DNA from: Mizuhopecten yessoensis
Lineage: Eukaryota
Assembly: GCF_002113885.1 (NCBI RefSeq)
Contig: NW_018407846.1
Span: forward strand, 493,158 to 557,157
DNA length: 64,000 nucleotides
Reading direction: 5' to 3'
Shown here: one piece after another, positions 17,716 through 43,754 of the stretch
Numbering within the stretch: position 1 is the first letter of the stretch
Layout of the letters: every line of letters begins with the position of its first letter
Made by a program: the position numbers and the translations under genes
Notes under the pieces: generated by a model
Database searches by the model: none
What the model was told of the DNA's origin: nothing
The model's input: the letters and a program-made list of their open reading frames with translations, nothing else

Positions 17716-17925
17716 GTCCTGGTTTGGCGGAATACGACATCAGGGCAGTCACTGTAGAAGTTCCCTGGGATGAAGCAAGTCAAGGATGTGAGGACATTGG
17801 ATACAACCTGTTTGACCCCGCAATGGTGACAAAGCAAACACTGGTATCAAAGGCACTCCTTCAGGAAGGGGAACGTTATTGGACAAGTACATACACGTCA
17901 AGATCCCCCTTCTATTGGAAACTTG
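17716..17925 (+). CDS. CTLD/WSC protein copy 1, exon 2 (N-half of C-type lectin domain 1)
   Basis: AG/GT bounded, phase 1-1; VPWDEASQGCEDIGYNL...RYWTS. Confidence 0.85.
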
Positions 17926-18229
17926 GTAAGGTTTAACCTTAGTACCCTCTAGTCCTACGAATAACTTATTGGGTAAATTCAAACACAGTATCGTCTGATC
18001 CTACTTGCGTTGTAAGTCTTAATCCAGACATTTCGGCTCATTACCTGTTTGCGAGTTTTGAGAGATTTCCCTCTGTATCACTTGTTCCTGCTCGCCTGGT
18101 AAAATTTAGCCTCAGTTTCCCCTGGTTCTAATTACACATTGATATTTAGCCACAGTATTTATTGGTTCAACATGCATTTGTCCGGTACCATGTAACTCAG
18201 TATCCCCTTTTACTTACTTGCCAGTCAAG

Positions 18230-20760
18230 ATTGAGCCCATGTGTTCTATAGTCCTATTTTCCTGTTAAGGTTTAATCCAAGTATCCTATAGTCCTAACTA
18301 TCTTTTAAGATAGACTTGCCTGTTGCAATTTGATTCCAGTATTCAATAGTCCTACTTGCCGTTAAAGATTTAACCCCAGTATTCCATAGTCCTAGACACA
18401 TGTTAAGATTTAAAACGTATTATTCCATAGTCCTAATTGCCTGTTAAGATGTATCCCCAGTTTATCATGGTCCTTCTCGCCTTTCTAAATTTAGCCGAAG
18501 TACATTATATCATGGTCCTACTCACGTTTTTAGATTTAGCCCCAGTATATAATGGTACTACACGCCTGTTAAGATTTAGCCCCAGTTTATCATGGTCCTA
18601 GTCGCAAGTTTAAATTTAGCATATTATATAGCATGGTCCTACTCGTCTTTTTGAATATAGCCCTATTTATCATGGTCCTCCTACTCACCAGTTAAGTTTT
18701 ATCCGCCGTTCATTATGGTCCCACTTTCCTGTTAAGATTTAGACTCAATATCATGGTCCTACTTGCCTGTTAAGATTTAGCCCCAGTATATCGTGGTCCT
18801 ACTCGCCTGTTAAGATTTAGCCCCAGTATATCGTGGTCCTACTTGCCTGTTAAGATTTATCCCCAGTATATCGTGGTCCTACTCGCCTGTTAAGATTTAT
18901 CCCCAGTATATCGTGGTCCTACTTGCCTGTTAAGATTTAGCCCCAGTATAACATGGTCCTACTTGCCTGTTAAGATTTAGCCCCAGTATATCATGGTCCT
19001 ACTTGCCTGTTAAGCTTAAGCCCCAGTATATTGTGGTCCTACATGCCTGTTAAGATTTAGCCCCAGTATAACATGGTCCTACTCGCCTGTTAAGATTTAG
19101 CCCCAGTATATCATCGTCCTACTTACCTGTTAAGATTTATCCCCAGTATATCGTGGTCCTACTTGCCTGTTAAGATTTAGCCCCAGTATAACATGGTCCT
19201 ACTCGCCTGTTAAGATTAAGCCCCAGTATATCGGGGTTCTACTTACCCGTTAAGATTTATCCCCAGTATATCGTGGTCCTACTTGCCTGTTAAGATTTAG
19301 CCCCAGTATAACATGGTCCTACTCGCCTGTTAAGATTAAGCCCCAGTATATCGGGGTTCTACTTACCCGTTAAGATTTATCCCCAGTATATCGTGGTCCT
19401 ACTTGCCTGTTAAGATTTAGCCCCAGTATAACATGGTCCTACTCGCCTGTTAAGATTAAGCCCCAGTATATCGGGGTTCTACTTACCCGTTAAGATTTAT
19501 CCCCAGTATATCGTGGTCCTACTTGCCTGTTAAGATTTAGCCCCAGTATAACATGGTCCTACTCGCCTGTTAAGATTAAGCCCCAGTATATCGGGGTTCT
19601 ACTTACCCGTTAAGATTTATCCCCAGTATATCGTGGTCCTACTTGCCTGTTAAGATTTAGCCCCAGTATAACATGGTCCTACTCGCCTGTTAAGATTAAG
19701 CCCCAGTATATCGGGGTTCTACTTACCCGTTAAGATTTAGCCCCAGTATATCGTGGTCCTACTTGCCTGTTAAGATTTAGCCCCAGTATAACATGGTCCT
19801 TCTCGCCTATTAAGATTTAGCCCCAGTATATCTTGGTCCTACTTGCCTGTTAAGTTTTAGACTCAATATCATGGCCCTACTTGCCTGTTAAGATTTAGCC
19901 CAAGTATAACGTGGTCCTACTCGCCTGTTAAGATTTAGCCCCAGTATAACATGGTCCTACTTGCCTGTTAAGATTTAGCCCCAGTATATCATGGTCCTAC
20001 TTGCCTGTTAAGCTTAAGCCCCAGTATATTGTGGTCCTACATGCCTGTTAAGATTTAGCCCCAGTATAACATGGTCCTACTCGCCTGTTAAGATTTAGCC
20101 CCAGTATATCATCGTCCTACTTACCCGTTAAGATTTAGCCCCAGTATATCGTGGTCCTACTTGCCTGTTAAGATTTAGCCCCAGTATAACATGGTCCTAC
20201 TCGCCTATTAAGATTTAGCCCCAGTATATCATCGTCCTCCTTGCTTGTTAAGATTTAGCCCCAGTATATCGTGGTCCTACTTACCTGTTAAGATTTAGCC
20301 CCAGTATATCATGGTCCTACTCGCCTGTTTAGATTTAGACTCAGTATATCATGGTCCTCCTTGCCTGTTAAGATTTAGCCCCAGTATATTGTGGTCCTAC
20401 TTGCCTGTTAAGATTTAGCCCCAGTATAACATGGTCCTACTTGCCTGTTAAGATTTAGCCCCAGTATATCATGGTCCTACTCGCCTGTTTAGATTTAGAC
20501 TCAGTATATCATGGTCCTCTATAACGAATTACTACTATATTTGTATAATTTTTCCCTTACTTGCCTGTAAAGATTTATCCGCAGTATAACATGGTCCTAC
20601 TCGCCTTTTTTAGATTTAGCCCCTATATATAATGGTCCTACTCGCCTTTTTTTAGATTTAGCCCCTATATATAATGGTCCTACTCGCATTTTTAGTTTTA
20701 GCCCCAATACATCGTGGTCCTACTCTCATGTTAATATTTAGACCCATTATATCATGGACA
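18230..20760. repeat. 40-bp intronic satellite (CATGGTCCTACTTGCCTGTTAAGATTTAGCCCCAGTATAT) with a 120-bp higher-order block at ~19141-19740
   Basis: 40-bp period; sequence lines 120 bp apart are identical from 19201 to ~19739. Confidence 0.95.
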
Positions 20761-21292
20761 TAACCCCGTTTTCCTTGATCCTTGTTGTCTTTTAATATTT
20801 AGCAACTGTATTCGCCTGTCCTTCATGTACCTGTTCCTCTTTCCCTATAGACTTGATGAGGCTTTGAGTAAAGATCAAGGATCGCAATTTGCATTTAAAC
20901 ATAAGAAAGTTAACAGCATACATGTATACACGACATCAGGGTAGAACTTCTAAAATGAAGCGCTGACAGAAGCAACAAATCGTTATTACTTTTGAATGAT
21001 TAGGGTTTGCTTATGATTAAATGTAAAAGAATATTATAGTAATTATGATCGCATGTTGGTGTGCTATAGTATATGTTTTTGCCGTGATCATATCATACAA
21101 TTTAGTTATACATGTGTGTACGCGTGTGTATAGATTGACGTGGTATGAATAGGTATTTATAAGTATAAATTTTCCTGGTGATTGTATATAACTGTAAGAA
21201 TGAATACGTTAGAATTCTGTACGATATAATATTATTTTGCTTGCGCATCGCACTGGATTTTATTGTCCATCATTTCAATTTTGTCTCAAAAG

Positions 21293-21405
21293 GTTGTTAT
21301 GACGTTAAGGACCGAAGTTCTCTGCATATGACCGACTTTGGAAGTGAAAACTCTGTCTATCAATGTTCCCAGAAATGTGGCGACTTGCAGTACATCGGAT
21401 TGGAG
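21293..21405 (+). CDS. CTLD/WSC protein copy 1, exon 3 (WSC N-half)
   Basis: GCYDVKD...NSVYQCSQKCGDLQYIGLE matches the WSC pattern; phase 1-0. Confidence 0.88.
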
Positions 21406-21700
21406 GTTCGTTTAAAGGAAATACGCTTTATAATTAACCTCTATCAAATGTGATAGTTTATTTGTATCGTCTGTGGATAGAGCCTCATCAATGTATACTC
21501 TCATCAAAGTATATTTAAGTCAATTTTAGAATTATATCGTTTAAGGAATGTGCGTATCTCCTCAATTATGTAAAAACTAATTCTTTCCACGTTAACTGTC
21601 CATTATCATACTAGTTTATCAACAAAATACGCCTTGAAACTATAACGTGTGCACACATGTAATAATGCATAATGCAACATTTTGATATTTCTCTCCTAAG

Positions 21701-21839
21701 GATACGGGTTGCTTCTGTTTTCCGGCCTCAGCAAAGCTGTCTCAAGAATCTGAAACCCCGTGCACGACTCTGTGTCCAGGGAACGCTAACGAAATATGTG
21801 GAGACTCCGGATCGGGCAAAATGTCGGTATACCGGAAGT
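21701..21839 (+). CDS. CTLD/WSC protein copy 1, exon 4 (WSC C-half)
   Basis: DTGCFC...CTTLCPGNANEICGDSGSGKMSVYRK; phase 0-1. This frame is not shown in the ORF track. Confidence 0.88.
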
Positions 21840-22996
21840 GTAAGTACAGTCATCTTCTACGGGTTCATATATACTTGCAAGCATACATCGGGAGTTGTTA
21901 CGTTTCTAAACACATTGGCAGCATTCTTTTCTTATATTGATTTACAAACTTCATTTTATGTATCAGAGGCATGTGCTCTTGTAAATTTCTAAATGTCAAC
22001 TGTTATTGTTTCTATCATCCTCAAACTTTTATGATTAATTTTCCCTCATTCAACGTTGGCATACACGACTTTTGCGGTACATGCGTCAAGGTTAAACAGT
22101 TTCAAATTGGAAAGATAGAGCATGTTCTCTATTACTGTATTATTCACATGGTATTTTGTTAGTAGATACCAATTATTATGTACAGTATTAGGAGAGCGTT
22201 GTTTCGTATTACACAAATGTTCAATTACGTCAGCCTGTAGCTTCATTAATTGAAACGTTTTCCAAATAACAAAGTTTGCCCGAAAGTTATACCTGGTATT
22301 TATTTCTTTTTTAATTATCCACTCATAACTAATCACGAGATACTACTAAAATTCTCAATATGTAGAGTATAACTGTATTCCGACATGCGTAGAGTATTTA
22401 TTCTAAAACATTAGACATGCTTATGTGCTCCTCAAAAACAGTCATAGGCCATAAATATCAATGCATTTAAAACAACTACGTTAACTATGTAAGCACGGAG
22501 ATTGCGACTTAATCTTCAGTACCCTAATTAAATGGAGATAATTAAAACTGCCTATACTTGTAATGCTCTATTAGACAAAAGCGCCGAAGGTATAGTATAT
22601 CATAGAACATCGAGAATAAGAAACAAAACTGCATCTTAAATGAAGGGAAAGAAACCTAACGTAGAAAACTGTATTTATAAAATGAACTTTAGTTGCCTTC
22701 TACTGTAAGTGTACAAAACGATTCATCGTTATTTTATATGATGGATGTGGTGGAAGCTTTTCTCAGTAAGCGAATACTTACTTTCAATAAAGCTGAAACT
22801 AATCTCGGTACCATATACTGTACACAATGATCCATTTTTGTGGCGAATAATACGTCAACTCATGGCTGGATAATGAATGCACAATATTCGATGAACGACA
22901 TTGTTTGAAATCTGAAGAAAACCACGTGAACCTTTTGAATTATTTCTATGATTTGTTACTCTTTCGCTTGAAAAATTAACTCTTTGTTGTTTAAAG

Positions 22997-23164
22997 TGGA
23001 CACTAATGAGGACAGGGTAACCTTAGAGGGAACGACGGGAGATTGTGTCACACTAAACAAAGAAAATGTAGATGCGATGTACAATTATTATTCCGACGAC
23101 GACGAACACCAATTGTTCACAGACAAAACCTGTACGGAAAAAAGGACATTCTTCTGTCGAAATT
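22997..23164 (+). CDS. CTLD/WSC protein copy 1, exon 5 (C-half of CTLD 1)
   Basis: GDCVTL...DKTCTEKRTFFCRN gives the terminal CTLD cysteines; phase 1-1. Confidence 0.85.
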
Positions 23165-23578
23165 GTAAGTCATGGAACGAAATCCCTATAACAGTATCTC
23201 TCATAACTCTTTATCAAATGTTTCTATACATATATAGTATTGTATTTCTGTACACTTCATCTTTTTTTATAACGAATTACTACTATATTTGTATATATCT
23301 TATATGCATACATTGGTATCAAGCGTCGATTTAACGTGACTGCCTACCTTGGGTATATATGGACTAAGTTAGTTGTCGACAATATAGCGTCCTTGATCTG
23401 ATAACATTTATGATAAAGGCCACCAAATGACTCTTCCAATGTCTAATGTTTTCTTGTATGTTTTTTGGGTTCATGATGCATTTGATTCGGTGACTCCTCA
23501 TTTTCAGTTGTCGCCTCTGATTTTTCAATTTTGTTCTTGTGCATTAACACAAAGTAATACAGAATATATATATTTCAG

Positions 23579-23800
23579 ATGTGTACGACCCAACCAAATC
23601 AGACAGTGACATATTTATTTATAAACCGGAAAACAAGACTTGGTACGAAGCTCAGAGTGATTGCTTGTCTAGTGGGAACGACCTCGCGTTTATCGATGGC
23701 TCCAACGCCTTCGGTGTTCTTTCCCGAGACACAATACCAGTAGGCTCAGAAAGTTGGGTCGGGCTATTTAGAGAAACTGCCGAACTCTCCGTAGCCGAAG
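23579..23800 (+). CDS. CTLD/WSC protein copy 1, exon 6 (N-half of CTLD 2)
   Basis: KTWYEAQSDCLSSGNDLA...SWVGL; phase 1-1. Confidence 0.88.
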
Positions 23801-24070
23801 GTACATCCAATACAAAGATTAATAATCAGAGTATTGTTTTAGATCGATTTGAATCAATATTGATCTATAATTGGTAACCTTAATTTTTTTCCTGACCTGT
23901 ATATGAAATGGAATCTACTATCAATGATATTTATAAAATAATGCTGCAACCGTTTATAATATCAGAATTGTAACAAGAGTTCACACATTTATAGGTATTA
24001 CTACACGAAATATTCTTGCACTCTCTGTCACGTTGTTTAGTATACATGGAGACTTTGTTCTTTCTTTCAG

Positions 24071-24297
24071 GGGATGTCACTGGTGATCTAGTGTCATGTA
24101 ATTCTATTTCCATCGACAGCAACGTACTGGAGGAGAGACACCAGCCGTGTATGAATAAGTTAAAGACGCTTTGTATGAAGGGTGGGTATGACATTACAAC
24201 ACAAGATAGCGGAAAAAGTCAACGTTTCACTCCAAGTCATATATGTATCGTTGTCAGCTTAGCTTTTTATTTCAAATTACGGTGGTTAGACTTATAA
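24071..24297 (+). CDS. CTLD/WSC protein copy 1, exon 7 (C-half of CTLD 2 plus hydrophobic tail; full model 376 aa)
   Basis: SCNSI...QPCMNKLKTLC, then read-through to TAA at 24297. An alternative donor at 24182 is possible. Confidence 0.75.
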
Positions 24298-24736
24298 CAT
24301 AAAAAGCCGTTGACAAAAATGAAAACGAACAATACAAACTATATTAGGCAAGGTTTTACACAAGTTATTTTTACAGAGTGTATATAATTTTTCTACGATT
24401 ATGTGGCGTTTATCCCCTCCCAACCTACTATTTATTTTGTTTGATAAGTTAACTATATTAAAATAAGCTTTTAATGAGATGCAATATGAATTTCTATAAA
24501 AGACAGCCAAGATATCCAATTCATGGGATTTGATTTTGATTTTGATATGTGAGTTTTTTAAGAAGTAAACTTTACTCAAGTTTGTGTATTTTTCTTAGGA
24601 ATTGACTTACCATGTTATATATAAATTATAACCACATTTTTCCCTTCTGATATCTTCTGTATGAATTGGTTGAGCACGTTTATGGAACGCCATAGCTGTC
24701 ACATATGGCATAAAAATACTATATGAATTGATATTT

Positions 24737-25200
24737 TCATTATATTATATGATTTTATCATTATATTATTCGATTATATCATTATATTATTTCATATCAT
24801 CATTAAATTATTTGATTTCATCATTATGTGATTTGATTTTATCATTATATTATATGATGTCATAGTTATATTATTCGATTTTATCATTATATTATTTCAT
24901 ATCATCATTATATTATTTGATATTATCGTTATATGATTTGGTTTCACCATTATATTATACGCTGTTGTCGTGATATGATTTGGTTGTATCGTTATATTAT
25001 TCGATTTCATCAATATATGATTGAACTTTATCATTATATTATTTAGTTTCAACATCATAGTATATGCTTTCGTCATTATATGATTTAGTGTAATCGTTAT
25101 GTTATTCGATATTTTATCATTATACCATTCCGTCATCATATTATTCACAAACGTCATGATGTTGCACAACTTCATTATATTATTGTACAACTTCATTATA
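24737..25200. repeat. Degenerate 21-bp subterminal array (TTTCATCATTATATTATTTGA), ~22 units
   Basis: 21-bp period; it produces the heptad-repeat ORF 24897..25271. Confidence 0.85.
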
Positions 25201-25849
25201 CGTTGGATACAATTCTGACAAGCGTCTCCGCGAATNAGGAACTTTTCACCGGGGCCCCTTAATTCTGCCATGTTACTACGTTAATACCGCCATTTCTGAC
25301 GAACGAAGCGGTGCTGCTGATGCAATTTGTAAGTATAGCTAAAACCTCAAATGTAAGGCAGCATATAGGCATCTTTCGGAAAAAGTCGTGTTTTATATAT
25401 ACTGATTTAGTGAGTACTGAATAGGCTGAAATCCTATAGAAGACACAGTGGATATCCTCCACCATTAGACAGCAACATACAGATATCAGTGCATTCTCGG
25501 GGGGGCTGAGCGGATATGGTAGTTGATTGCATTGTACCCGTCCGTTCTTCCATCCTTCCGCCTTGGTTCTATCCCCGACATACACTCGGGTAAAACACAA
25601 TAAAGGGCCCAGGTAGAAAAGCTGAATGTTATAGATCTAGAGGCTTCACAATAACACACATCATTGCACAATTTTTCTTTTAAGTTCAAAATTTGTAGTC
25701 TAGGTTGTTGGATATTGACACAAAATTTCAGCTATTTCTGACCAAGCATTTCTGAGAATGTGTATAATAATGTATGGAAAATGTGACAATTTCGGAAATT
25801 ATTCTGTTGCACTTCAAATTTAAGCATTTTTTGCACAACTAATATTTAA

Positions 25850-26370
25850 TAAACGGTGTTTTTGACCCCCCTGGAGGCAGAGAGGTGGGGCCCAATAGGG
25901 AAAATAGAGGTAAAACGTTTAAAATCCTTCTTCTACCATAGGGACTAAGGGATTTTATCCTAATTTAGTCTGGAGCATCCTTGGGCCAAGGGGACTCAAT
26001 TTTGTATAAGCATTGTGTGTGGTCTCCCAGGGGGCAGAAGGGTGGGGCACAATAGGAGAAATAGAGGTAAAACCTTTAAAATCCTTCTTCGACCATTGGG
26101 ATTATGGGATTTTATCCTTATTTAGTCTGGAGCATCCTTGGGCCAAGGGGACACAATATTGTATAAACGGTGGGTATTAACCCCCCTAGGGGCATAGGGG
26201 TGGGGCTCAGTTTGAAGTTTGCTCCCGTTTTATCTCAAGAACTGGATGGATCTTTCTAAATTTCATATGTACTTAGAGCACCTACCATGGAGTGCTATAT
26301 CTTTACTTCATACCAATTATTTTAAACATATTCAGGTGGGCGATACATGCCCTCTGGGTCTCTTGTTTTT
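25850..26370 (+). mobile_element. HINE-like (non-autonomous Helentron) element, 3' part with ~157-bp internal repeats
   Basis: Repeat units at 25894/26051; end CAGGTGGGCGATACATGCCCTCTGGGTCTCTTGTTTTT. Confidence 0.6.
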
Positions 26371-26504
26371 CACTGTCAGAGCACACAGTTGGGCCCATTA
26401 TTGTGTTTTACCCGACTCCTTGCCATTGTAACTTCATACCTGGGGCATGAGTTTACGTAGGTGAGGCGGTGTGTCATGTATCAAAAGGAGGTCACTTACC
26501 TATA

Positions 26505-27082
26505 TTTTTAGCTCACCTGCCCAAGGGCAAATGAGCTTTTGCCGTGGTGCGGCGTCCGTCAACTTTCCCCTATAAACAACTTCTTCTCAATAACAGAGAG
26601 GCAAAGATACCTGATATTGGGCCTGTAGCATGCTGGGGTGAAGGGCTACCATGTTTGTTCAAATGAATGACCTTGACCTACATTCAATGTTACAGGGGTG
26701 AAAAAGGCTAAAATCTCTAAACAACTTCTTCGCAATAACCAAGAAGCCCAGAGACCTGATATTGGGCCTTTAACATGCTGGGGTGAAGGCTACCAACTTT
26801 TTTCAAATGAATGACCTGGACCTATTTTCGAGGTCACAGGGGTCAAATAGCCTATAATCTTTAAATGATGACTTAATAACCAAGAGACCCAGAGACCTGA
26901 TATTGGGCCAGTAGTATGCTGGAATGAAGGGCTACAGAAGTTACTTAAATAAATAAACCTATCCTGCTCATATATTTGAATAAAGGGGTAATCAGCTTAG
27001 CATCCACATTAATGACCTAAAGTCTTAATACAGTTGCATTAGAAGCAGGTGAGGGATACAGGCCCATTGGGCCTCTTGTTTT
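26505..27082 (+). mobile_element. HINE-like element, complete
   Basis: 5' subTIR AGCTCACCTG (26510), GTCC microsatellite seed, ~145-bp repeats, 3' CAGGTGAG (27046), palindrome AGGCCCATTGGGCCT and T-run. Confidence 0.75.
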
Positions 27083-27084
27083 AA

Positions 27085-28465
27085 TAAAGTTTTCCCGGCC
27101 CCCTAGTCGTTCCATCCCCTAACCGGTCCATCCTTAGTCGTTCTGGCCCCCTAGTCATTCCGACGCTTTTATATAATGTCTGTACGTCAACAATTTCTTC
27201 AAACGACTGATTGGAATTTAACTAAATTTGACTGGCAGCATCCCTAGGTGGTGGAGATTCAAAATATCAATCATACTTGATCAGAAGCCAAAAAGGGTTA
27301 TTTGACTTTATTGCTTTAAGCGGCTTCTTCTCTGGAACTAAGAGATGGATATCAACTATTTGACTGGAAGCATTCTTATATAGCTAGGTGGTGAGGACTC
27401 ACAATTGTACAAATGGTGGGGCTGAGGGGCAGGGCCAAAGGGGGGCAATTTGGCTATATTGCTATAAACGACTTCCTCTGTAGAACTATGCCATGGATAT
27501 CAAACATATTTGGTCGGAAGCATTCATGGGAGGCAGGGATTCAAAATTGTACAAATGGTGGGGCTGAAACCCCCGGGCTAAGGGGTGGGGCCAAAACAAG
27601 TGTATTACTTGGAAATGGTTGAGATCCCCACCGTATTACCATATATATACAATTGCTGAGTATAAAGAAAAGAATGCACATTTGCTTCCAGGATGGCCCT
27701 GGGGTCTGGCCCTACCCTTGGAGACATAGTCCCTGGGTCATAACTTTGAAACGGTTGAGATCCCCACCCAAAACCTCGATATACAAATGCTGGGCATAAA
27801 GAGAAGAATGCAATCATGATATTAGAATTGACCCTTGGGTCTGACCGAACCCCTAGGGACGTAGTTTCTTAGTCACAGCTTGGAAACAGTTGAGATCCCC
27901 ACCCTATAACCATATACAATTGCTGAGTATTAAGAGATGAATCCACATACGCTTCCAGGATGGCCTTGGGGTCTACCCCACTCTTGGAGACTTAACCCCT
28001 GGGTCATAACATCAAAACGGTTCAGATCCCCACCCCAAAACTATATATATACAATTGTTGGGCATAAAGAGACAAATGCAGTCATGATATTAGAATTGAC
28101 CCAAGGGTCTGTCCCACCCTTGCAGACTTAACCCCTGGGTCATAACTTCGAAACGGTTGAAATCCCCACCCCAAAACTATAAATACAAATGCTGGGCATA
28201 AAGAGACAAATGTAGTCATGCTATTAAAATTGATCCTGGGGTCTGGCCACATTCCTAGGGACCTAGTTTCTGAGTCACAGCTTTGAAACAGTTGAGATCC
28301 CCAACCCATTACCATTCATAAATTTGCTGGGCATGAAAAATCTAATACAGATGTGCTATAAGGATTGGCCTTGGGGTCTGGCCTATTCCCTTGAATCTCA
28401 TTTGGAGAATATTTTGCAATGATTGCTTAGATATCCAGGTGAGCTGGCCAAGGGCCTCTTGTATT
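27085..28465 (+). mobile_element. HINE-like element(s) with ~134-bp tandem units (27600-28400)
   Basis: TTGAGATCCCCACC-like motif recurs every ~134 bp; end CCAGGTGAGCTGGCCAAGGGCCTCTTGT. The 5' boundary is uncertain. Confidence 0.6.
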
Positions 28466-28587
28466 TGGAGGCAACATCATTATATTTGGTGACGGACTAC
28501 CTTTATTATAGTGTAGCTTCATCATACAGTGTGCTGTAATTGTGTGGTTGCAGTTTTAAAGTCTGTATGCTTGTCTTTTCAGCCAAA

Positions 28588-29949
28588 ATGGGAGACGGAC
28601 AGATGTCAGAAATACTCAAGAAACTTGCCCTGGGCCATGCATGCAATAATTTCAAAAAAGAGAAAATAACACCTGACATTGTTGTAAAACTGTCTGCATT
28701 TGAGCTGGAAATTTTAGGTATACCAAATTCTTCGGACATGATGAAACTTAGAACTGAATGTGTAAAGTATGGTCACTGTCCTCCTGCCAAAGTTACACTA
28801 AATGGTGGGGCCCCAGCCTACGATATTCCGAAATGTACACTCGAGTATCTTTTAGATAACGGTTTTCCAATATCTGACATATCCAAGATACTTCAAGTTT
28901 CTGAAAGAACAGTTTACCGTAGGATGTGCATGTATAATTTGAGTAAAATGTCATTTAGTAACATTTCGGATGAACTGCTCGATGAAAACTTACGAAAAAT
29001 AAGTAAAGATTTCCCTTTTTGTGGTGAAGGTATGGTAAAGCAAATGCTGTTTCAGCAAGGTATTAAAGTGCAAAGATGGCGTCTCCGGGGTTCCTTGCAT
29101 CGCATAGACTCGGAAGGAGTTTTGGAACGACGTAAAGGACGGCTCCACAGACGCGTGTACAATGTTATGGCACCTAATCACTTGTGGCACATAGACACTA
29201 ATCATAAGCTTGTTCGGTGGCGGTTTGTAGTAGCAGGCGGTATCGACGGTTTTAGTAGGAAGATCATGTTTTTGAAATGCTATGACAACAACAAATCTGC
29301 AACTGTGTTTCAAAGTTTTTTTTCTGGTGTATGCGAATATGGAACACCAAACAAAGTCCGCTCAGACAAAGGTCTAGAAAATGTAGATGTGGCAAACTAC
29401 ATGCTGTCTAACAGAGGATTAACTGGCATGATAACAGGGAAGAGTACCCACAATCAGCGTATTGAACGTTTGTGGCGCGATGTATACGAAGGTGTTCTAA
29501 GTTTTTTTTACAATTTATTCTACTATATGGAAGATCAAGGGATTTTGGACTGTTTGGACAGTACTCATTTACAAGCCCTTCATTATATATATATGGATGA
29601 AATTAACAGAAGGCTATGTGTATGGACCAATGCATGGGATGCTCACAGAATGAGAACTGTGAAGACGTCCCCACAAGCGCTGTGGATTGCTGGGCAATTA
29701 CAAAACACAGTTGGTGTTGACGTAGATGAACATGAATTACAGGACTATGGTGTAGAGGGTTCAATTCCTGATGTTCTGCTAGAAACTGCGCAGAATGAAA
29801 GGCCCATATTTAGTCCTCTGTCCGAACTTAATGACCGGTGCATACAGATATTGACACAGGAAGTTGGTTCTCCTAGCTTTAATGTGAATTTTGGAATTGG
29901 CGATTATAAAACCTCTTTGAGAGTGATACGTTTATACAACAGTCAATGA
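28588..29949 (+). CDS. IS3-like DDE transposase/integrase-core protein (453 aa) with N-terminal SAM-like and HTH regions
   Basis: Uninterrupted [41 protein letters not shown] (D..D-32-E); [25 protein letters not shown] follows an acceptor TTTTCAG at 28582; candidate upstream donor at 25329. Confidence 0.9.
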
Positions 29950-30469
29950 TGTAACTCAAGTGAGAGGCTGTTTGGAATCAGCTGTTTGTTTCATATTTAA
30001 GAAAAGGTATGGTCTCAAAAATAAAGAACTAAACATGAGGCACATGGGGCCTGCATCGCTAACCTGGATATTTCAGTGATAAGTGCAAAGCACTATATTA
30101 AGTTATATACACGTATTACAAATACTTTCCCTATTTTGGGATTTACCTCTCATTACCATGTATTGCACTTTCTTTTAACTAGCATTTAGCTTTCTGGTTC
30201 AAAATAAGATTGTAAGCAAATTAAGTTGAAAAGCACTCAACATAAGTCATGAATAACCAATTGACTTATTTTATTGGGTCCCACACATCTGCCTCTGGTG
30301 GAATTGAGATTAGAATCTGTATATATGCAATAAAAAGATTGTTTAACTTGTGTGCATAATAACAGTAGTAGTAGTAATGTCGCAGAAATACTATTTTATA
30401 AAAAGAATCTGTAATTTTTCTAATCCGGATGTATAAAGGCAAGATACTGTTACCTATATTCGTATATAA

Positions 30470-31538
30470 TTATTCCCCGCTTTCACCGAAATGGGGGATA
30501 TTAATTTGGGTCTCTCTGTCTGTCATGCTTCGTTTCCGTGAAATATTTAACTACAACAAATATTAACCGATTTTCTTCAAACTTAGTCACAGTGTAAAAT
30601 GCCTTAAGGGCTCGACCAAGTTTGATGACCACTTTCAGCAGACCCCAATTGGCGGAGTTATAGCCCCTTGAATAACAAAACGTCATTATCTGCCGTTTCC
30701 TTGCAATAACTGCAGCACATGTTAACCAATTTTCTTCAAACTTGGTCGATTTTGATGAAAATTGGTATATAGGGATATTAGGGGACTGCGAATTCAACCG
30801 CATAGGTTTTGTTGCCATAGCAACCACACAGAGGCTTCTGATTGGTGGAAATTCAGATATTGTTCGATTTTGATGAAAATTGGTATATACTAATATAGGG
30901 GTATAATTAATAAGGGGACTTCAAATTCAACCGCATATGTTTCATTGCCATATCAACCACATGGAGGCTTCTGATTGGTCGAAATTTAGATATTTTTCGG
31001 TTTTTATGAAAATTGGTATATAGGGGTATTAGGAGACTGCGAATAAAACTGCATTAAGTTTCGTTACCATAGCAACCACACGGAGGCTTCTGATTGGTCG
31101 CAATTTAGATATTGTTAGATATAGGGGTATTAGGAGACTGCAAATTAGATTCTGATAATTTCACTCAAATTTAGTATGTACATTGTAGGTGTACTATGTT
31201 AATGCAATCCTTTTCTGATGCATCTCTGCGACTATGGGGGCAGTTTGAGGGCCATCTGTTATGGTCCTCCATTATAATTAGTACTTGTTGCTGTAGATAT
31301 TAAGATGTTTCAACCTAATTCCTTATGCACATCCAACTCATGCTAAGTTTGCCAACCAATGTGATTTGTGCATATTTACGGATAATCAATGAAGTATAGG
31401 GCTTTTTTTTCTTCAAGTTTCAAGCTATACATTATGTCTCAACAGCACGATACTCGCATGTTTAAACCTAACCTCAATAATGTTAACCTACAATATGTCC
31501 TGCAAGCGGGGGATATAAATTCCACAAATTTGCTTGTT
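30470..31538 (+). mobile_element. HINE-like element with ~142-bp internal repeats
   Basis: subTIRs TTCCCCGCTT (30473) and AAGCGGGGGA (31504), TCTG microsatellite, repeats at 30745-31140. Confidence 0.65.
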
Positions 31539-32848
31539 GTATATTATTACATGGCTTACAGGTAACTGGCCAGATAAACTAATTATGTATGTTTGCATAA
31601 ACTTGTATGTACATGTACGTCATGATTGTCTCTCTTTGCACAAAATGTATTATTCATGCATAATTATTGTTTCAATGCATGTATTATATATTATCATGCT
31701 CTTCATTTTGAGGAAATAAAGATAATGATACAGCAGAAAAAAGATTTTGAGGAAATTCCTCTTTTTTTGCCCTTTTGGGCCCCGCCCCTCCACTTCCAGG
31801 TGAGACGGTCCGACCCTCCATTTTTTGACGGGCATATAAAAAATATTGAGATATGAGACCACACTTGCACCTTAATATGTGCAAATTCTAAGTTACAAGC
31901 AATGAAAGAAAAAGAACAATGTGATGAACTACTTTATTTGTTGTCAAATATAGTGTACAAACCATTGACATTCTATGCCATTCTACTAAACTAAAATTAA
32001 TTGAATATGAAAAAAATAATTATTTTACAGACAATTTATAATTTTATTACTGCGACATCTCTTTTATGGGGGTAATGCAAGTTGCATACTAGTATATTTT
32101 AATGAATCAAGGTTGAAATAAATCATACTTGTCAGGGTTTCAGAAATAGGAGATCAACAAACGGTAATCAAATTTTAGCAGCTCAATATATTGGCACTAA
32201 TGTAAAATTCTTCCAAGATATCTACACATAATTTCCCCAAAGGTTCCCAACATATAAAACAAGTATATAGAACAAACTTGAAATGGCTGAAGTACATATA
32301 AATCATTACCAAGATTTATATTCCAAATATCTACTGTTCGATCTGTCTAAATCAATGATTTGTTTTGCGACGTTTTTTATATACCGGTATATATACTGTT
32401 AGTGTTATGCCTTTCAGGATTAACTTAGTCTTTGTTTATAGCAATAGCTAATTGATCAAAATAGTTTCTAATTTTACAAGTAAATGATAAAGGGGGGAAA
32501 ATGCCTCTTTATAACTACCAAAATTTGGCAACTGAAGTCACACAATTCAGTTAAACAATGATGTCTAATTGCCAGTAATTCTTTGTTTCTTTATAAGATT
32601 TTCTGGACATATCTAGAACAAACAGAAGATATATAAATTTCTGTGAAATATTTAATATTCTTTGCAATACCATGATCATTTGTGGAAATAATATCCATTC
32701 TGTACTTTTTGATTCCTTGATCATTACATAAATTTAGTACAAAGAAAATTGAACTTTTATTAATCAATTCTATATTTGTTTTATTCTAATGTAATACCAA
32801 TGGCCACAAAACAAGTGAATCCATGTACTATGTACATGTATATATATC

Positions 32849-33660
32849 AACAAGAGACCCATGGGCCTAAACGGTCATCTGACTACTACAGCAGTGGGTA
32901 ACTACTTGTCAGTAAAGAAATTCAAAAAAGCATTTAAAGCAAAATTGTAGCTAAGTTCCCCTTTTGGGATATCAATTAAACTTCAGTCAATTTTTTTCCT
33001 GTATGGCCCTTGGGATATATAAGGGTCAAAATGTTAACATGATAAAACTTATATATATATATTGCATAGTAATATTCAAACTGAACATAAAATCATTTAC
33101 TGGCAGTAAAATATTTAACAAAATTTTAACCTTAACCATCTCACAGGTTGCAAGAATTTAAGTGGAAAATGTACAGCTTTCCTAAGGCACTCTACATGCA
33201 TCATCGTAAAAACTCTTTCAATCCACGAATATAGGGATTGCTACTACCATATCTGGGTCTGAAAAATTTCGGCATAAATATGGCTGCTCTATCTAATGGG
33301 GTGAACATGCACATATGCTTTGGTTTGGTTTGGTTTATGGCCATGGATGGTTTCAACGATATTGGTGCAGGGTGCAACTGGAAGAAGAAATATTAGCATC
33401 CTTTCCCTATACTCTCCAAATTCAACTAGAACTGTAGGCCAATGGCTAACTAATACTCCCCCTCCCCCCATCATTTGCGACCATGGCAACCAAATGACAT
33501 CTATCGTTTCGAAATTCTGAAAGTTGGTTGGTTAAATATACAATGCAATTTGATCTCATTAACCACAGATAAACATGGAGGGCTGACATAGGCTTGTATG
33601 TATAAAAGAGGTGATAATGGACAGATGGACAACAAACATTTTTTGTCAGAAACACACAGA
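32849..33660 (-). mobile_element. Degenerate HINE-like element
   Basis: AACAAGAGACCCATGGGCCT palindromic end, GGACAGATGGAC microsatellite remnant at the other end. Confidence 0.5.
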
Positions 33661-33941
33661 CCATTACCAAAAGTACATCCCTACAAAGTTTTAATGAAAT
33701 CAGTACTTTTTTCTCACAAATAATTATAATCTATTGTACATTAATTGTTCCTTGCATTACAAAACAGCATATTTTGTGCTAAGCTAAGTTACTGTAAGTA
33801 GTTTTAATACAAAAGCAGATTTTCTCCTTTTCACTTCAACAACGTATGAAAATCAAATGATGACATTTTTGTTTTTCCTTAAAAAACAGTCAATTAACAG
33901 GTATATGTATAACGTTTCTCAGCAAAGATGCACTGCGCGCC

Positions 33942-34200
33942 TTATTGTATTCCAAAATATTTGTTTTGGAACGCGTAGTCGTACAAGCTAAACAATTTCT
34001 CATCTTCGGGCAATTTTTCACTGTTGCCGTTGGTCTTGGTAGATACATACAGCAACTACAGGTATTTGCAGTTGGGATGAAACTGGGACTCATCATTACA
34101 AACTCGATAGAAGGGCCAATGGAAAAACCCAAAGCAGGCTCGTCACTGGCTGCCGTTACAAACTCCAAAATATGTGATAATATCACACCTCTTCTTCCAC
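33942..34200 (-). pseudogene. HECT-domain (G2E3-like) E3 ligase, last exon with catalytic PTANTC; frameshifted
   Basis: SGRRGVILSHILEFVTAASDEPALGFSIGPSIEF...FIPTANTCSCCMYLP. After a frameshift in the A5 run (34014-34018) it reads LPEDEKLFSLYDYAFQNKYFGIQ*. Confidence 0.8.
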
Positions 34201-35002
34201 CTAAAAAAAGGAAAAATAGGTGTAAAATTCTTATATGACAATAAGGCGAATTAGTCTCCCACTGAATATGAAAGTGTATGCAAGTATCAAACATTATGAC
34301 CTACTTTTGATACAGGACACAACACCTCACCTAGGTCAACCCTTGCCCCAAGTATAAAGTTTTCTTCAGTGCTTTCATAATAAAAAAAATCAGATGCTTT
34401 ACATTAGTTCTGCTTCGTCATGTGGGCAAAATCATCACTTCAATATTCATACTTGATGGTCAAAGGTTAAGTAATCCATCCATTACTTCCTGATGATTCT
34501 CAGATCAATTCCAAAATTGAATCCGAACCTTAGGGACCACGTGGAACCTATATAATATGAGAATGAGCCACCCAATACTTCTAAAGGAATAGTGATAATG
34601 GTCACCTGTTGGCTATTTTATTTTTCACAATTAGTTCCAAAATTAAATAAACACAACTATTGACCTAGGGTACAATGAAATTTGAGAATGATCAATTTTG
34701 CAGTACTTTTCAAGAAAGAGCAATAACAGGAATTGTTTTAAGGACAGACAGACGGCGACGCAAATACAATTTAGTTGTCATTTTAGCATGCATAGACCTC
34801 TAATGATTTTATATATATACCCTATAGGGTATGGGATGTATACTGATGGACTTAAAAACCTTCCAAATACTCACCCAAAAACTTAAAGTGAGTTTTGATG
34901 CAAACGAAATTCAATGTTAATAAAGTAATTGAAGTATGCGAGCACCTTATTTACGTAATAGACATGCATAAATATTGATGCATTGCATCTCAAAATTCAC
35001 CT

Positions 35003-35440
35003 AAACAAGAGATCCCAGAGGGATCTTGGCACCCACCATTGAATGATCTTCAGTAATTGGTTCCATGTAAGACTGATCTTTTCTCTACTTTCCGTTCTTT
35101 CATCCTTAATTTTCCCTTTAATAATTTGATAACAAGGAAATCCTTCATATGAAATCTAAGAAAGATCTAAGAAGAACTTTCTGTGACATACAAAATGTAG
35201 CGATAACAAACTTCCAACTGACAAAATCCAAGATGGCCACCTGTCGGCCATTTTGTTTTCCCAATCAGAATCAAAATTGAATGGGCACATCTAGGGACTA
35301 AGGGGAACCTACATGTGAAGTTTGAGAAACATCCTTCAAGTACTTCTCAAGAAATAGCGATAACAAGGATTGTTTATGGACAGACGGATGATAGACAGGC
35401 GATTTGAATAGCCCACCATCATCAGACGGTGGGCTAAAAA
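35003..35440 (-). mobile_element. HINE-like element in HECT intron
   Basis: AAACAAGAGATCCCAGAGGGATCTT palindrome; GGAC microsatellite; TAGCCCACC..GGTGGGCTAAAAA end. Confidence 0.7.
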
Positions 35441-35676
35441 GTCCAGTTACCCAGAATCCCCATTTTCCAGAGTCACTGGAACATAATGTTTTATGGTATT
35501 AAAGAAATGATGGTGTGTTGAAATTAACATTATGTCATCATAACTATATACCAAGTTTGATTAAGTTTGGACAAGTATTTTTGAGAAATGGATCTATAAA
35601 TTCAAAATTTTTAAAGTCAACTCAAAAGTAACACCATATAAGTCTTGCTTCTACATCCGACAATGTTATAACTAAC

Positions 35677-35851
35677 TGGCAACTTCACGAACATATCTCA
35701 TAAAGGCAGAGTATACTGCTCCCTCTAGGATCCTGCTGTTGGAACCTGTCTCTGAAAACTTCGGCTTCAAATAATGTGTCAACGCCCTTACTGTAAGCTT
35801 TCTGTTGGATGGTCTCAGAAGGAAGACAAATGCAGGGACACGATTACCAAT
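35677..35851 (-). pseudogene. HECT-domain gene, penultimate exon
   Basis: AG/GT bounded; IGNRVPAFVFLLRPSNRKLTVRALTHYLKPKFSETGSNSRILEGAVYSAFMRYVREVA; phase 1 joins the 34200 exon in frame. Confidence 0.8.
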
Positions 35852-36037
35852 CTACAAAGACATATGCACAGTTAAATATATGTACATTAGAAGTAGCATT
35901 TTTAAAAGAAATATAACCATAACTTGTATATGATTTCTGTTTCAAACAGATTCTAAGTGGGATACAAACTTTATTACAGCTATACATGTATATATGAATT
36001 AAAACAAGACGGCTGTCCGTCGATCTCCACAAATCAT

Positions 36038-37907
36038 ACAAGAGATCCCAGAGGGATCCTGGCGCCCACCTTTGTACCATCTTCATTAGTTCTTTGTCAG
36101 TTCGATCTTTTCTCTTCTTTCCTCTAATCTGTTTGATCAAGTCATGTTAACAGTAAATGCACCTTGAGGTAACTTTTGATCTAAACTTAATACTGATGTG
36201 TATGAAAGCCAACTTTCAAAGTGAGTTTGTCATTTCACATATTTACTAGTACAGTACTTAATGTGAAAGAAATAGAATCGATCATTGCAATATGAGAAAG
36301 ATCTGTTTAGTTCNNNNNNNNNNNNNNNNNNNNNNNNNNNNNNNNNNNNNNNNNNNNNNNNNNNNNNNNNNNNNNNNNNNNNNNNNNNNNNNNNNNNNNN
36401 NNNNNNNNNNNNNNNNNNNNNNNNNNNNNNNNNNNNNNNNNNNNNNNNNNNNNNNNNNNNNNNNNNNNNNNNNNNNNNNNNNNNNNNNNNNNNNNNNNNN
36501 NNNNNNNNNNNNNNNNNNNNNNNNNNNNNNNNNNNNNNNNNNNNNNNNNNNNNNNNNNNNNNNNNNNNNNNNNNNNNNNNNNNNNNNNNNNNNNNNNNNN
36601 NNNNNNNNNNNNNNNNNNNNNNNNNNNNNNNNNNNNNNNNNNNNNNNNNNNNNNNNNNNNNNNNNNNNNNNNNNNNNNNNNNNNNNNNNNNNNNNNNNNN
36701 NNNNNNNNNNNNNNNNNNNNNNNNNNNNNNNNNNNNNNNNNNNNNNNNNNNNNNNNNNNNNNNNNNNNNNNNNNNNNNNNNNNNNNNNNNNNNNNNNNNN
36801 NNNNNNNNNNNNNNNNNNNNNNNNNNNNNNNNNNNNNNNNNNNNNNNNNNNNNNNNNNNNNNNNNNNNNNNNNNNNNNNNNNNNNNNNNNNNNNNNNNNN
36901 NNNNNNNNNNNNNNNNNNNNNNNNNNNNNNNNNNNNNNNNNNNNNNNNNNNNNNNNNNNNNNNNNNNNNNNNNNNNNNNNNNNNNNNNNNNNNNNNNNNN
37001 NNNNNNNNNNNNNNNNNNNNNNNNNNNNNNNNNNNNNNNNNNNNNNNNNNNNNNNNNNNNNNNNNNNNNNNNNNNNNNNNNNNNNNNNNNNNNNNNNNNN
37101 NNNNNNNNNNNNNNNNNNNNNNNNTCGTCTGAAATTTGAGAAAGATTCCATTTGGTACTTCTGGAGAAATAGCGATAACAAACTTTCACTATCAAAATCC
37201 AAGATGGCTGCCTGTCGGCCATGTTGTTTATCCGATCAGTCTCAAAAGTTGCCCTGCACAGCTTAAAACCATGGAAAACCTACATATAAAATTTGAGAAA
37301 GATCCCTCTGGTACTTCTTGAGGAATAGTGATAACAAACTTTCACTATCAAAATCCAAGACGGCTGCCTGTCGGCCATGTTGTTTATCCGATCAGTCTCA
37401 AAAGTTGCCCTGTACAACTAAGGACCAAGGGGAACCTACATATAAAATTTGAGAAAGATCCCTCTGGTACTTCTTGAGAAATAGCGATAACAAACTTTCA
37501 CTATCAAAATCCAAGATGGCTGCCTGTCGGCCATGTTGTTTATCCGATCAGTCTCAAAAGTTGCCCTGCACAGCTTAAAACCATGGAAAACCTACATATA
37601 AAATTTGAGAAAGATCCCTCTGGTACTTCTTGAGGAATAGTGATAACAAACTTTCACTATCAAAATCCAAGACGGCTGCCTGTCGGCCATGTTGTTTATC
37701 CGATCAGTCTCAAAAGTTGCCCTGTACAACTAAGGACCAAGGGGTACCTACTTATGAAATTTGAGAAAGATCCCTCTGGTACTTTTTGAGAAATAGCGAT
37801 AACAAGAATTGATTAAGGACGGACCACGGACGAACCACGGACGGACCACGGACCACGGACGCAGGGTGATTTGAATAGCCCACCATCAGATGTTGTTGGG
37901 TTAAAAA
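36038..37907 (-). mobile_element. HINE-like element with ~156-bp tandem array (dimeric 312-bp period), spanning a gap
   Basis: Same end motifs as 35003-35440; repeats at 37130-37800; GGACCAC microsatellite at 37817-37860. Confidence 0.65.
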
Positions 37908-38044
37908 TTCCAAGATGCTGCCTGTTGGCCATTCCTATCAGTCCTAAAATCAAACATGTCCATTAATTAATTAAGTATTTCTTTAGCCACAGTGATTAAT
38001 ACACACAGATGGAACACTAATGATGAGCTATTTGAACAGCTCAC

Positions 38045-38186
38045 AATCCAATGATGGTGGTCTCATCCAAGCCCGTCCTCAAATTTTGAATACAGCGTGA
38101 ACTGGATTTCTCATCAGAGAACATTTCATTCAATATATCATGTGGAATGAAGGTAGGTAAAGTACCATTCTGCAAGATGCTAAGAC
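38045..38186 (-). pseudogene. HECT-domain gene, upstream exon (N-lobe segment); 3' end probably overwritten by repeat
   Basis: Acceptor TTTCAG; GLSILQNGTLPTFIPHDILNEMFSDEKSSSRCIQNLRTGLDE. The nearest donor (38044) is out of phase with the next visible exon. Confidence 0.65.
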
Positions 38187-38344
38187 CTGAAACATAAATA
38201 GCACTGACTGTCAGTTATTCTGAAGTTGTTAACACAGTTTTAACACATTTGACCCCTGTGACCTTGAAAGTAGGTCCAGGTCAATCATTCCAGTAGGCTA
38301 CTTAAAAGCTTGTCCAATATCATGACCCTGGGCCTCTTGAAGTA

Positions 38345-38792
38345 TATAAACGAAATTCTGACCCTCTTATATACACGAAACCCTGAACCTGTTATATAAA
38401 CGAAACTCTGAATCTCTTATTTACACGAAACTCTGAACCTCTTATATACACGAAACTCTGAACCTCTAGCATACACGAAACTCTGAACCTGTTATATAAA
38501 CGAAACTCTGACCCTCTTATATACACGAAACCCTGAACCTGTTATATAAACGAAACTCTGAATATCTTATTTACGCGAAACTCTGAACCTTTTATATGCA
38601 CGATACTCTGAACCCCTTACATGTATATACACGAAACTCTGAACATCTTATATACACGAAACTCTAAACCTCTTATATACACGAAACTCTGAACCTCTTA
38701 CATACACGAAACCCTGAAGCTCTTACATACTCGAAAAATCTGAACCTCTTATATACACAAGACCCCGAACCTGTTAATTACACGAAACTCTG
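38345..38792. repeat. 25-bp satellite, variant B
   Basis: Same unit as 1240-1935. Confidence 0.95.
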
Positions 38793-40918
38793 ACTAGGTT
38801 GTTCGGATCATGACTAGTCAGCTTACCGTACTGTCTAAATAATATTACAACTGTTAAACAAGGGACTGTTTAACAATAAAGGGCATTCATACACAAAATA
38901 CTTTTTTCTTTATATTACATTTAAAAGTTTTTTTGTTTTATTTTTGACTTATGAGAACGTAACGAGAAATAAGTTCATGTCTCTTCGTAACTAAAGAAGA
39001 CGACTGGATTCTCTTTTCCGTTTAAATACCGGTAACACAATAATCACCCATAATTATATTGCTAATAACAACATTCTACCCAACGAGGTGTAAAGAGTCT
39101 TAAAACCCCTTTGGCAACGGTGCAAAGCAACTTTGATGTGTTCTTTTTGACAGTAGAAACCCGATTCGGGTTTTACTTTCATAGGCCAATTTTCCTTTCT
39201 CATATAATTTGCAAATAAGTATTCATTCTGAAAATAATTATAAAAAAACCGAACCATGGCGGTTCATTTTCATACCATTGCGTGTGTATAACAGCATGAA
39301 CATAAAGTAAGTTAACAAACACCATTGAATTCCAAAGAGTAGCCCAGAGTTCTGTATCATGTCTGTGCTATTTCAATATGCATTCTTAAATAAAAATCTC
39401 GCTATATATCCTTCATGTACATAAGAACGTGGATTACTGTTTCGGATTTACAGTATGTGAGGAACATTAAAGGCGAGTTCGTAACAGACACAAGTTGGTG
39501 TGTGTTAAAAGCCAAGTAATGTTTACATTTCTCCCTATGAACGTTGCATTCAATTTTCTCGTCGTTTTTTATGTGTTGGAGTAATGATGTGTTATCGTGC
39601 TGTATTATCTCTGATCAAAAACGGCTCTCTACTGACAGTGTACGTACAAGTATAGCCGATCTTTGACGTGTATAATGACTGGTTCTTTGTTGACTCGCAT
39701 TAATGCAGCTATACGAAAAAGATTGAGCAAGTACAATTTGTGAAAACGTATTTCTTTTACACGTTGGTTCTGACTTGAGAATACTTCTTTAGGAACTTTG
39801 CAAAGTCTTGTGGATACGAACATGTATAATGGCTCTCACATTCATTCTTGACCACAAAACATCAATCTTAGACTGAATATCCCTCGTCTGGCTGCATTGT
39901 TTATCAACAAAACCCGGTTTTATGTAAGGTAAGCCATATCTATTTATTTATTTACTGTAGTGGCCTTCAGTTCTATGTCGAATTTATTATTTTGCATATC
40001 ATATTTATGTTATAGATAGGTTTGTAGCTCTATGTTTTGTGTAGTCACTTAATGCTTTGATGTGTTCAGATGTTATCACTTTCTTTGACTATACAGTGAA
40101 GTGTAATCAACAGTGCTTCCAGGACGAATGTCTAAGTATGTAGTTTATATTTAAACGTTCTGATACGTTTGAGGCATAATTGTATAGAATATTACATTTT
40201 GACATCACTATGCAAATTAAGAGTATTCGTTTTATTTTGGGCTATTTTATTGATGACTCAAATGTATATGATATTATAGACAGATTACTACAACTCTTGT
40301 CGGCAAATTTTTGTCGTCCTTGTACAAAAATGTATTAATATTTAACGGCTTTAGATTTACGTTAAAGGAACAATAAAATAAGTTGTATATTAATTATTTT
40401 GTTTGTGACCTCATGTTTAAAAGCCCACCATTTTCCTTTTTGGTATATTTTTTTTACCGAGAGAACAATCGGACATATAATTACATAATTGTTTGTCCAA
40501 AACTCAAGCTGTGCATAGTTAAATAATATGATTATAAAGATAGAAATGTGTGAAAATGTGCTTTCCGTGTGAAAGCGACAATGACTGGGTCCTTTTCGTT
40601 TAAAAAATGTTAATAAACTGTTCTGTTGTCACTAGTTTCTCTTATACGCTGATGTTCGTCAATGGAAACTCGATGGTCTAAATGTCCAATAACTACACGA
40701 ACCATCATCTTTATGTTTATTAGTGTAAAGTTTGAAAATAATTCTCACAAACTTCTTTCATACACGTGAAGATATTATCCTATCATTTACAGTTTTTAAT
40801 GACATTATTTTGTAAATGTACGTATTGCTGCTGTATCAGAATGAAGCTTACATACAGTTAATGGATTCAGTATAGGATTTATACTGCCGACACGTGGTTT
40901 AGGTGATATTAGGTCTAT

Positions 40919-43461: not shown

Positions 43462-43754
43462 GATGTCAAAAAAAAACCCACTAGAAGTTAGTCAAAGTTA
43501 TTTAATGTGACAAAGACAATGGGGTTATATTTGTACAGAAATATGTACAGGCGAGTGTGTTATGGAGATGTCATGTCACATATAGGATACATACCTGTAC
43601 TTCAGAACAACGATCATAAGGGAGGTGTCTTTCGCAGACTTAATGTAACCAGAGATGGTGATTTCTTTATTTCTCTGACAGAAAATGAATATATTTAATT
43701 GGAGTTATATTACCGAACAGTACAGCTATCTATCAACATGTGTTTCTAGTAAAA

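Follow-up and report, generated by a model that had tools for sequence, protein, structure and literature searches.

A probable truncated IS3EU/GingerRoot transposon in the scallop Mizuhopecten yessoensis, from a family pairing a transposase gene with a convergent HECT ligase gene

Results

We analyzed a 64,000-nt stretch of the genome of the scallop Mizuhopecten yessoensis (contig NW_018407846.1, positions 493,158 to 557,157, hereafter the window), in which a preliminary description had proposed a single IS3EU-like transposon of more than 13.6 kb, combining a DDE transposase with a convergent, spliced HECT ubiquitin ligase gene. The segment from 24681 to about 38342 is very probably the left 13.7 kb of a cut-and-paste transposon of the IS3EU/GingerRoot type, from a family with a two-gene architecture, and has lost the ligase half of the element. 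The assignment to IS3EU/GingerRoot is based on bacterial and Pfam families and on published descriptions.

The plan of the family is as follows. Long terminal inverted repeats (TIRs), starting with TATGGAACGCC, are followed by phased 21-bp subterminal repeats, and enclose two convergent genes, each of which starts beside one TIR. The first gene encodes a transposase made of a SAM domain, a helix-turn-helix (HTH) and an integrase-like DDE core. The second encodes a ligase of about 660 residues, with a SAM domain, a ubiquitin-like domain, a C2HC zinc finger and a compact HECT domain. Of this plan, the window copy retains the left end together with a transposase gene that has a spliced leader and an intact open reading frame (ORF); from 38343 on, a duplicated segment of the host takes the place of the ligase-side half. 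Features are listed in Table 1.

Table 1. Coordinates of the element and of adjoining features in the window
Feature	Position	Strand	Remarks
Left flanking 6-mer CACGTT, would-be half of a 6-bp target site duplication	24675..24680	.	Direct reading
Left terminus TATGGAACGCCATAGCTGTC	24681..24700	+	Single occurrence in the window, 0.02 expected
Subterminal array, 21-bp repeats, about 19 units	24720..25124	+	TRF (Tandem Repeats Finder)
Non-coding leader exon of the transposase mRNA, 3' part	25299..25328	+	Donor GTAAGT next; one X2 contig
Leader intron GT..AG, 3.25 kb	25329..28582	+	Nested repeats 25869-26166, 26605-26935, 27607-28308
Transposase coding exon	28583..29949	+	ORF 28588-29949; SAM-like 1-60, HTH about 85-117, DDE core 190-374
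HECT-like exon C (last; C-lobe, PTANTC, stop at 33942), residues 578-662	33942..34200	-	2-nt insertion
HECT-like exon B, residues 518-577 of P0122	35677..35851	-	Spliced to exon C in contigs
Assembly gap	36314..37124	.	Within the intron between exons A and B
156-bp tandem repeat, interspersed-repeat-like, intron A-B	37132..37805	.	TRF
HECT-like exon A, residues 467-518 of P0257	38045..38187	-	Original donor lost
25-bp satellite opening copy 2 of the host segmental duplication	38343..38793	.	Element breaks off between 38188 and 38343

Complete relatives enclose both genes between inverted repeats

The family plan is best seen in complete relatives. In the coral Desmophyllum (L012), an element of 8,643 bp (9349-17991) has TATGGAACGCC at both ends and is flanked by a perfect target site duplication (TSD), CTTTTT. 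Its TIRs, about 630 bp long and 92-96% identical, enclose a transposase gene on the plus strand and a gene for a 655-aa HECT protein on the minus strand, and the two start codons lie 12-26 nt from the inner TIR edges. In the mussel Sinanodonta woodiana (L018), the element measures 16,592 bp (8096-24687), with a perfect TSD GATATC and TIRs of over 1 kb, each arm holding arrayed 21-bp repeats that extend over more than 1 kb; there too the repeats enclose both genes. A third element, of 22,161 bp with 676-bp TIRs, was found in Argopecten irradians (L021, 6573-28733), complete scallop relatives being about 22 kb long. All three start and end with TATGG..CCATA, of which the window shows the left TATGG only. 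Such termini, together with the 6-bp TSDs, agree with published IS3EU elements (PMC12730594, PMC10045372) and with the ends given in the preliminary description. TIRs and 6-bp TSDs in these relatives fit transposase-mediated excision and insertion.

Convergent HECT-like exons accompany the transposase gene in 12 of the 14 element copies, from 8 species of Cnidaria, Mollusca and Hemichordata, the latter represented by Ptychodera flava (TIRs were not found within the Ptychodera locus). This bears on the possibility that the transposase and the HECT exons of the window are neighbours by mere chance, which might be suspected since no right TIR encloses the two genes there. In 11 other copies the genes have this order, these strands and this class of spacing. 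Window and Argopecten element are colinear between the terminus and exon A, their similarity beginning at the terminus and their flanks failing to align. A fortuitous vicinity is thus already contradicted, and we give it practically no credit.

Copies of the element are found at unrelated sites

In Pinctada imbricata, two copies on different chromosomes (L013 and L014) are 99.985% identical over more than 13 kb, starting from the exact terminus, and have unrelated flanks. In Argopecten irradians, two copies of about 22 kb (L020 and L021) are 99.2% identical and also have different flanks. Such near-identical pairs at different sites point to very recent transposition, and make these copies candidate active elements. 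At least three copies exist in Mizuhopecten (the window, L001 and L016), sharing one terminus but preceded by three different left flanks. L001 had been considered as another assembly of the window locus, which was rejected, L001 being a paralogue located on a different scaffold. The window locus itself is present as L017 (scaffold NEDP02004519.1 of assembly GCA_002113885.2), which is 100% identical to 15320-39949, N gap included. An NCBI gene model of the WSC type covers all of L017, which places the element within or between copies of a lectin-type gene.

These copies also allow us to weigh whether the two genes could be domesticated, or ordinary host genes kept side by side by synteny rather than mobile. 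NCBI annotates both as host genes, and the transposase coding sequence is nearly identical in the three Mizuhopecten copies while their flanks differ by 2-5%. Yet the genes are surrounded by TIRs and TSDs, near-identical copies sit on different chromosomes, and every copy has unrelated flanks, with neighbouring genes that differ between loci. The HECT homologues are therefore multicopy and linked to the transposase, not single-copy syntenic genes separate from it, and the recurrent convergent linkage expected by the preliminary description is observed. TIRs, TSDs and copies already contradict the host-gene interpretation, which we consider very unlikely.

The near-identity of the Mizuhopecten transposase genes deserves a comment of its own. 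Between 28588-29949 and its counterparts in L001 and L016 (10001-11362), 3-5 nt of 1362 differ, of which 0-1 are synonymous (3-6 differences among the three copies in the comparison of nonsynonymous and synonymous rates, dN/dS), and the element DNA around is 2-5% different, with many indels. The coding sequence is more uniform than plain purifying selection would leave it, and its uniformity may stem from gene conversion or from the collapse of copies in a short-read assembly.

The left end

The element opens at 24681 with an IS3EU/GingerRoot-type terminus, TATGGAACGCC, followed by the 21-bp subterminal array, as had been noticed in the preliminary description, and similarity between copies begins precisely at this position. 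The terminal 11-12 nt also precede the transposase gene of Argopecten, Pinctada, Crassostrea and Dreissena, and the elements of Sinanodonta and the coral Desmophyllum carry them at both ends. A period of 21 bp is likewise seen in the coral, Sinanodonta, Crassostrea and Dreissena, and Pinctada (L013) has a 63-bp period. The 21-bp subterminal repeats are probably binding sites for the transposase.

In Crassostrea angulata (L003), the terminal motif precedes the transposase gene twice, in direct orientation and at a distance of 1.5 kb (7811 and 9351), which possibly reflects a nested or tandem arrangement of the left end.

The transposase gene of the window is intact

The ORF at 28588-29949 on the plus strand encodes 453 amino acids, in the order SAM-HTH-DDE, without interruption. 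Its product matches the Pfam family PF24764 (rva_4, integrase core) with an E-value of 3e-73, as well as HTH_23, and its residues 7-54 have weak matches to SAM_1 and SAM_2. The top bacterial families (NCBIfam) are IS481 (E 1.6e-9) and IS3 (E 6.6e-9), and the coral homologue matches IS481 with an E-value of 4e-16. The DDE triad (D203, D260 and E293) is kept in at least 97% of 110 relatives, and the ORF is 99% identical to Mizuhopecten yessoensis LOC110446871. The IS3-like DDE transposase of the preliminary description is thus confirmed.

Contigs of about 1.6 kb from RNA-type runs cover the transposase exon. A single contig, from run X2, splices 30 letters (25299-25328) onto 28583, which lies 5 nt upstream of the ATG and directly follows TTTTCAG; the leader exon is therefore known by its 3' part, from this one contig. 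According to this contig, most of the 3.9 kb between terminus and ATG would be a leader intron filled with repeats, and transcription would begin near the TIR. In the other two Mizuhopecten copies this intron shows about 3-5% substitutions, and 14-15% within the repeats at 27601-27937.

RNA-type contigs also contain frameshifted transposase sequences, with 8-nt or 1-nt deletions at 29188 (run X7) and 29316 (run X5). These indicate that frameshifted paralogues or alleles of the transposase are also present in runs X7 and X5.

The ligase family is predicted to adopt a HECT fold

Full-length ligases of the family (P0122, 662 aa, and P0162, 622 aa) show a weak Pfam SAM_1 match plus a HECT C-lobe, and another member, P0136, has a zf_C2HC_14 match in addition. 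A profile built from 20 C-terminal regions matches AREL1, E6AP, RSP5, WWP1 and other HECT ligases with E-values from 2e-13 to 1e-8. These matches span the start of the N-lobe and the C-lobe, and the catalytic Cys is aligned with that of the AREL1 motif LPTAHTC. This Cys and the HECT motifs are nearly invariant across the 20 diverse members. In an AlphaFold (AF2) model of mean predicted local distance difference test (pLDDT) 80, compared by Foldseek to the PDB, all the matches listed were HECT domains, with probability 1.0 and template modelling (TM) scores up to 0.73. As modelled, the ligase is thus a bilobed HECT protein with a conserved catalytic Cys. The HECT identity put forward in the preliminary description is upheld by these matches to both lobes of solved domains, and so is its reading of PTANTC, in the window, as the catalytic PxAxTC motif, since it aligns with LPTAHTC of solved HECT domains.

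The N-terminus of the ligase is modelled as a five-helix SAM fold with pLDDT above 95, the nearest structure being the SAM domain of tankyrase-1 (TM 0.73, root mean square deviation 1.9 A, 31% identity). Residues 118-230 of P0122 form a predicted alpha/beta domain (pLDDT 93-97) that weakly resembles ubiquitin-like folds (USP7 Ubl, UBX and Ras-binding domains), and the N-terminal model also contains a small zinc finger. The first 60 or so residues of transposase and ligase are homologous to each other (hhalign 97.8%, E 7e-13). Cross-matches between the two N-termini recur in tblastn searches, and the N-terminus of the transposase also weakly matches the tankyrase SAM.

The ligase gene of the window is a remnant

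The three minus-strand exons of the preliminary description correspond to successive parts of full-length HECT-like proteins (Table 1). The peptides of exons A, B and C align in order to residues 467-664 of full-length relatives, so that the remnant amounts to the C-terminal 198 residues or so of a HECT ligase of roughly 660 residues. For residues 1-466, no match was found across the 64-kb window by tblastn at E up to 5 with full-length relatives (coral, Sinanodonta, Argopecten, Ptychodera and other proteins), whose matches were exons A, B and C only. The window exons were searched one by one. 

Exons B and C join in frame, and the joint 34200|35677 is present in contigs of three public runs (X5, X2 and X7, one of them recorded as RNA), which reach from 34200 into 35677-35706. 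The splice into a C-lobe that had been proposed is therefore real as regards the joint, but exon C does not keep its frame to the end: the A-run at 34014-34018 is two letters longer than in Argopecten, which creates a frameshift ahead of the last 25 codons. Exon C is intact in the paralogue L001 and in those loci of other species that carry it. Compared with Argopecten, exon A has lost 11 nt at its end and with them the donor site, and the GT that is left does not match the phase of exon B. The ligase gene of the window is thus a dead pseudogene remnant, consisting of the last three exons, with one donor lost and one frameshift, and gene models of the host should not include these exons.

The assembly gap in the intron between exons A and B is not expected to hide an exon, because in relatives the residues encoded by A and B follow one another directly (the corresponding Argopecten intron is 268 nt long). 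ORFs listed across the gap (36314-37124) are runs of X. Units resembling the 156-bp repeat of this intron are also found at 35191-35420 and in the Argopecten intron.

The right edge is a rearrangement junction

No right TIR was found in the 64-kb window, whether by pattern search (at most 3 mismatches), inverted-repeat search, or low-stringency blastn of 24681-25260. Inverted repeats initially detected in 22-42 kb as TIRs were rejected, as they are interspersed repeats. Compared to the Argopecten element, about 10 kb are missing to the right of exon A, and from 38343 to the end of the window nothing matches ligase residues 1-466 or a right TIR. A segmental duplication brackets the element, 38343-64000 (copy 2) matching 1487-21749 at 91-95% identity. 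Position 38342 is therefore a junction with a duplicated host segment, created by rearrangement, and not an element end. Of the single large element initially proposed, the part that stands is that the family encloses both genes; the window copy itself is truncated. A hypothetical tandem duplication with one breakpoint in the ligase intron would explain the junction at 38343.

The preliminary description had also reasoned that the element block is absent from the host duplication. This argument does not hold: copy 2 stops at the window end, exactly where copy 1 continues towards the element block, so that the block cannot be called absent.

Several satellites accompany the duplication. A 25-bp satellite starts both copies (1-1934 and 38343-38793), a 40-bp satellite is present in both (18300-20800 and 60270-61670), and a separate 41-bp satellite of about 48 units lies at 43753-45692.

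Discussion

Several observations weigh against the reading of this segment as part of a two-gene transposon, or against a shared function of its genes. For the window copy, the right end, and hence the TSD, cannot be shown, and spliced B-C reads can be assigned equally to a paralogue as to this copy. In Argopecten (L021) the 6-mers on the two flanks are identical at just 4 of 6 positions. The truncated Mizuhopecten copy L016 has no ligase nearby, its similarity to the window ending at about 33752, and in Dreissena (L015) no ligase was found within 10 kb of the transposase. All three Mizuhopecten transposase ORFs are intact although at least two of the copies are devoid of a working ligase gene, from which it follows that no ligase is required in cis. 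No full-length Mizuhopecten ligase was found among 109 relatives of P0162, which is no proof of absence. Lastly, the role of the ligase in transposition is a proposed one.

Many genes are captured by transposons, and the HECT gene might thus be a passenger acquired by one IS3EU lineage, with no role in transposition. Fungal IS3EU elements do carry other cargo, namely TET/JBP and alpha-kinase genes, and the loss or breakage of the ligase gene beside intact Mizuhopecten transposase ORFs, as well as its absence within 10 kb of the Dreissena transposase, speak for this reading too. Against this, position, orientation and exon order are constant in three phyla, the catalytic Cys and HECT motifs have remained nearly invariant in 20 diverse members, and in the coral the TIRs reach to within 12-26 nt of each start codon. 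Moreover, the ligase has the transposase's own SAM domain, which random capture leaves unexplained. We therefore regard a mere passenger as improbable.

Tentatively, and with less confidence than we have in the nature of the element, we suggest that the ligase may be an integral cofactor of the transposon, recruited by the shared and possibly polymerising SAM domain, and that host ubiquitin may serve to control the transpososome or to disable a restriction factor. In such a scheme, the transposase would bind the terminal and 21-bp repeats, and the ligase would be recruited to it by SAM-SAM contact between the homologous domains. At the transpososome, the ligase could then ubiquitinate the transposase, for its turnover or its removal after strand transfer; alternatively, its substrate could be a host factor that limits transposition. 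In the models, the top structural matches of the ligase N-terminus are polymerising SAM domains, those of tankyrase-1, BICC1 and ANKS3/ANKS6.

How does this family compare with known systems? IS3EU/GingerRoot elements have TA..TA ends and 6-bp TSDs (Kojima and Bao 2023, PMC10045372), and GingerRoot homologues were reported in corals and oysters (2019, PMC6839031). The present family resembles them by its integrase-like DDE transposase, nearest to bacterial IS481/IS3, with an HTH and no HHCC finger, by its TA..TA ends (here TATGG..CCATA), 6-bp TSDs and long TIRs, and by its occurrence in corals, oysters and acorn worms. It differs in that the searched papers describe a transposase only, and neither a convergent HECT gene, nor a SAM domain in the transposase, nor phased 21-bp arrays. 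Fungal IS3EU elements have TAYGG..CCRTA ends, 6-bp TSDs, and TET/JBP dioxygenase and alpha-kinase genes within the TIRs, the transposase and alpha-kinase genes being oppositely oriented (Kojima 2025, PMC12730594). The superfamily, the ends, the TSD length and the presence of extra genes inside the TIRs are thus common to both. In contrast, the extra enzymes of the fungal elements are a DNA demethylase and a kinase, and here a ubiquitin ligase; hosts are animals here, and transposase and ligase have a domain in common.

With cellular HECT ligases (AREL1, E6AP/UBE3A, the NEDD4 family and HUWE1), the transposon ligase shares the bilobed fold, the N-lobe start motif GGPR.EFF, and a catalytic Cys in LPTA.TC about 30 residues from the C-terminus. 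Its HECT domain is compact, about 260 aa instead of 350-380 aa, with a shortened N-lobe, and ends with a distinct tail, LF..YD.AF.N.YFG. Unlike the cellular enzymes, it joins HECT with a SAM domain, a ubiquitin-like domain and a C2HC finger, and is encoded in a transposon. It may also resemble G2E3.

Viruses hijack host ubiquitin ligases or bring their own. For DNA transposons, no description of an element bringing its own ubiquitin ligase was found in the literature searched: papers naming IS3EU made no mention of HECT, and wider searches on HECT plus transposons returned nothing relevant, nor any description of the transposase-HECT pairing. Should the ligase prove to be an integral cofactor, this would be, to our knowledge, the first eukaryotic DNA transposon family shown to have its own ubiquitin ligase.

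The finding also matters for annotation: hundreds of marine-invertebrate proteins labelled 'uncharacterized', 'HECT domain-containing' or 'integrase catalytic domain' are halves of one mobile element. The near-identical copies of Pinctada and Argopecten suggest recently active elements, which makes them directly testable. The two-gene family is old enough to be common to cnidarians, molluscs and hemichordates, and this conserved IS3EU lineage offers a concrete case for studying the means by which a eukaryotic transposon regulates its transposase or escapes control by the host.

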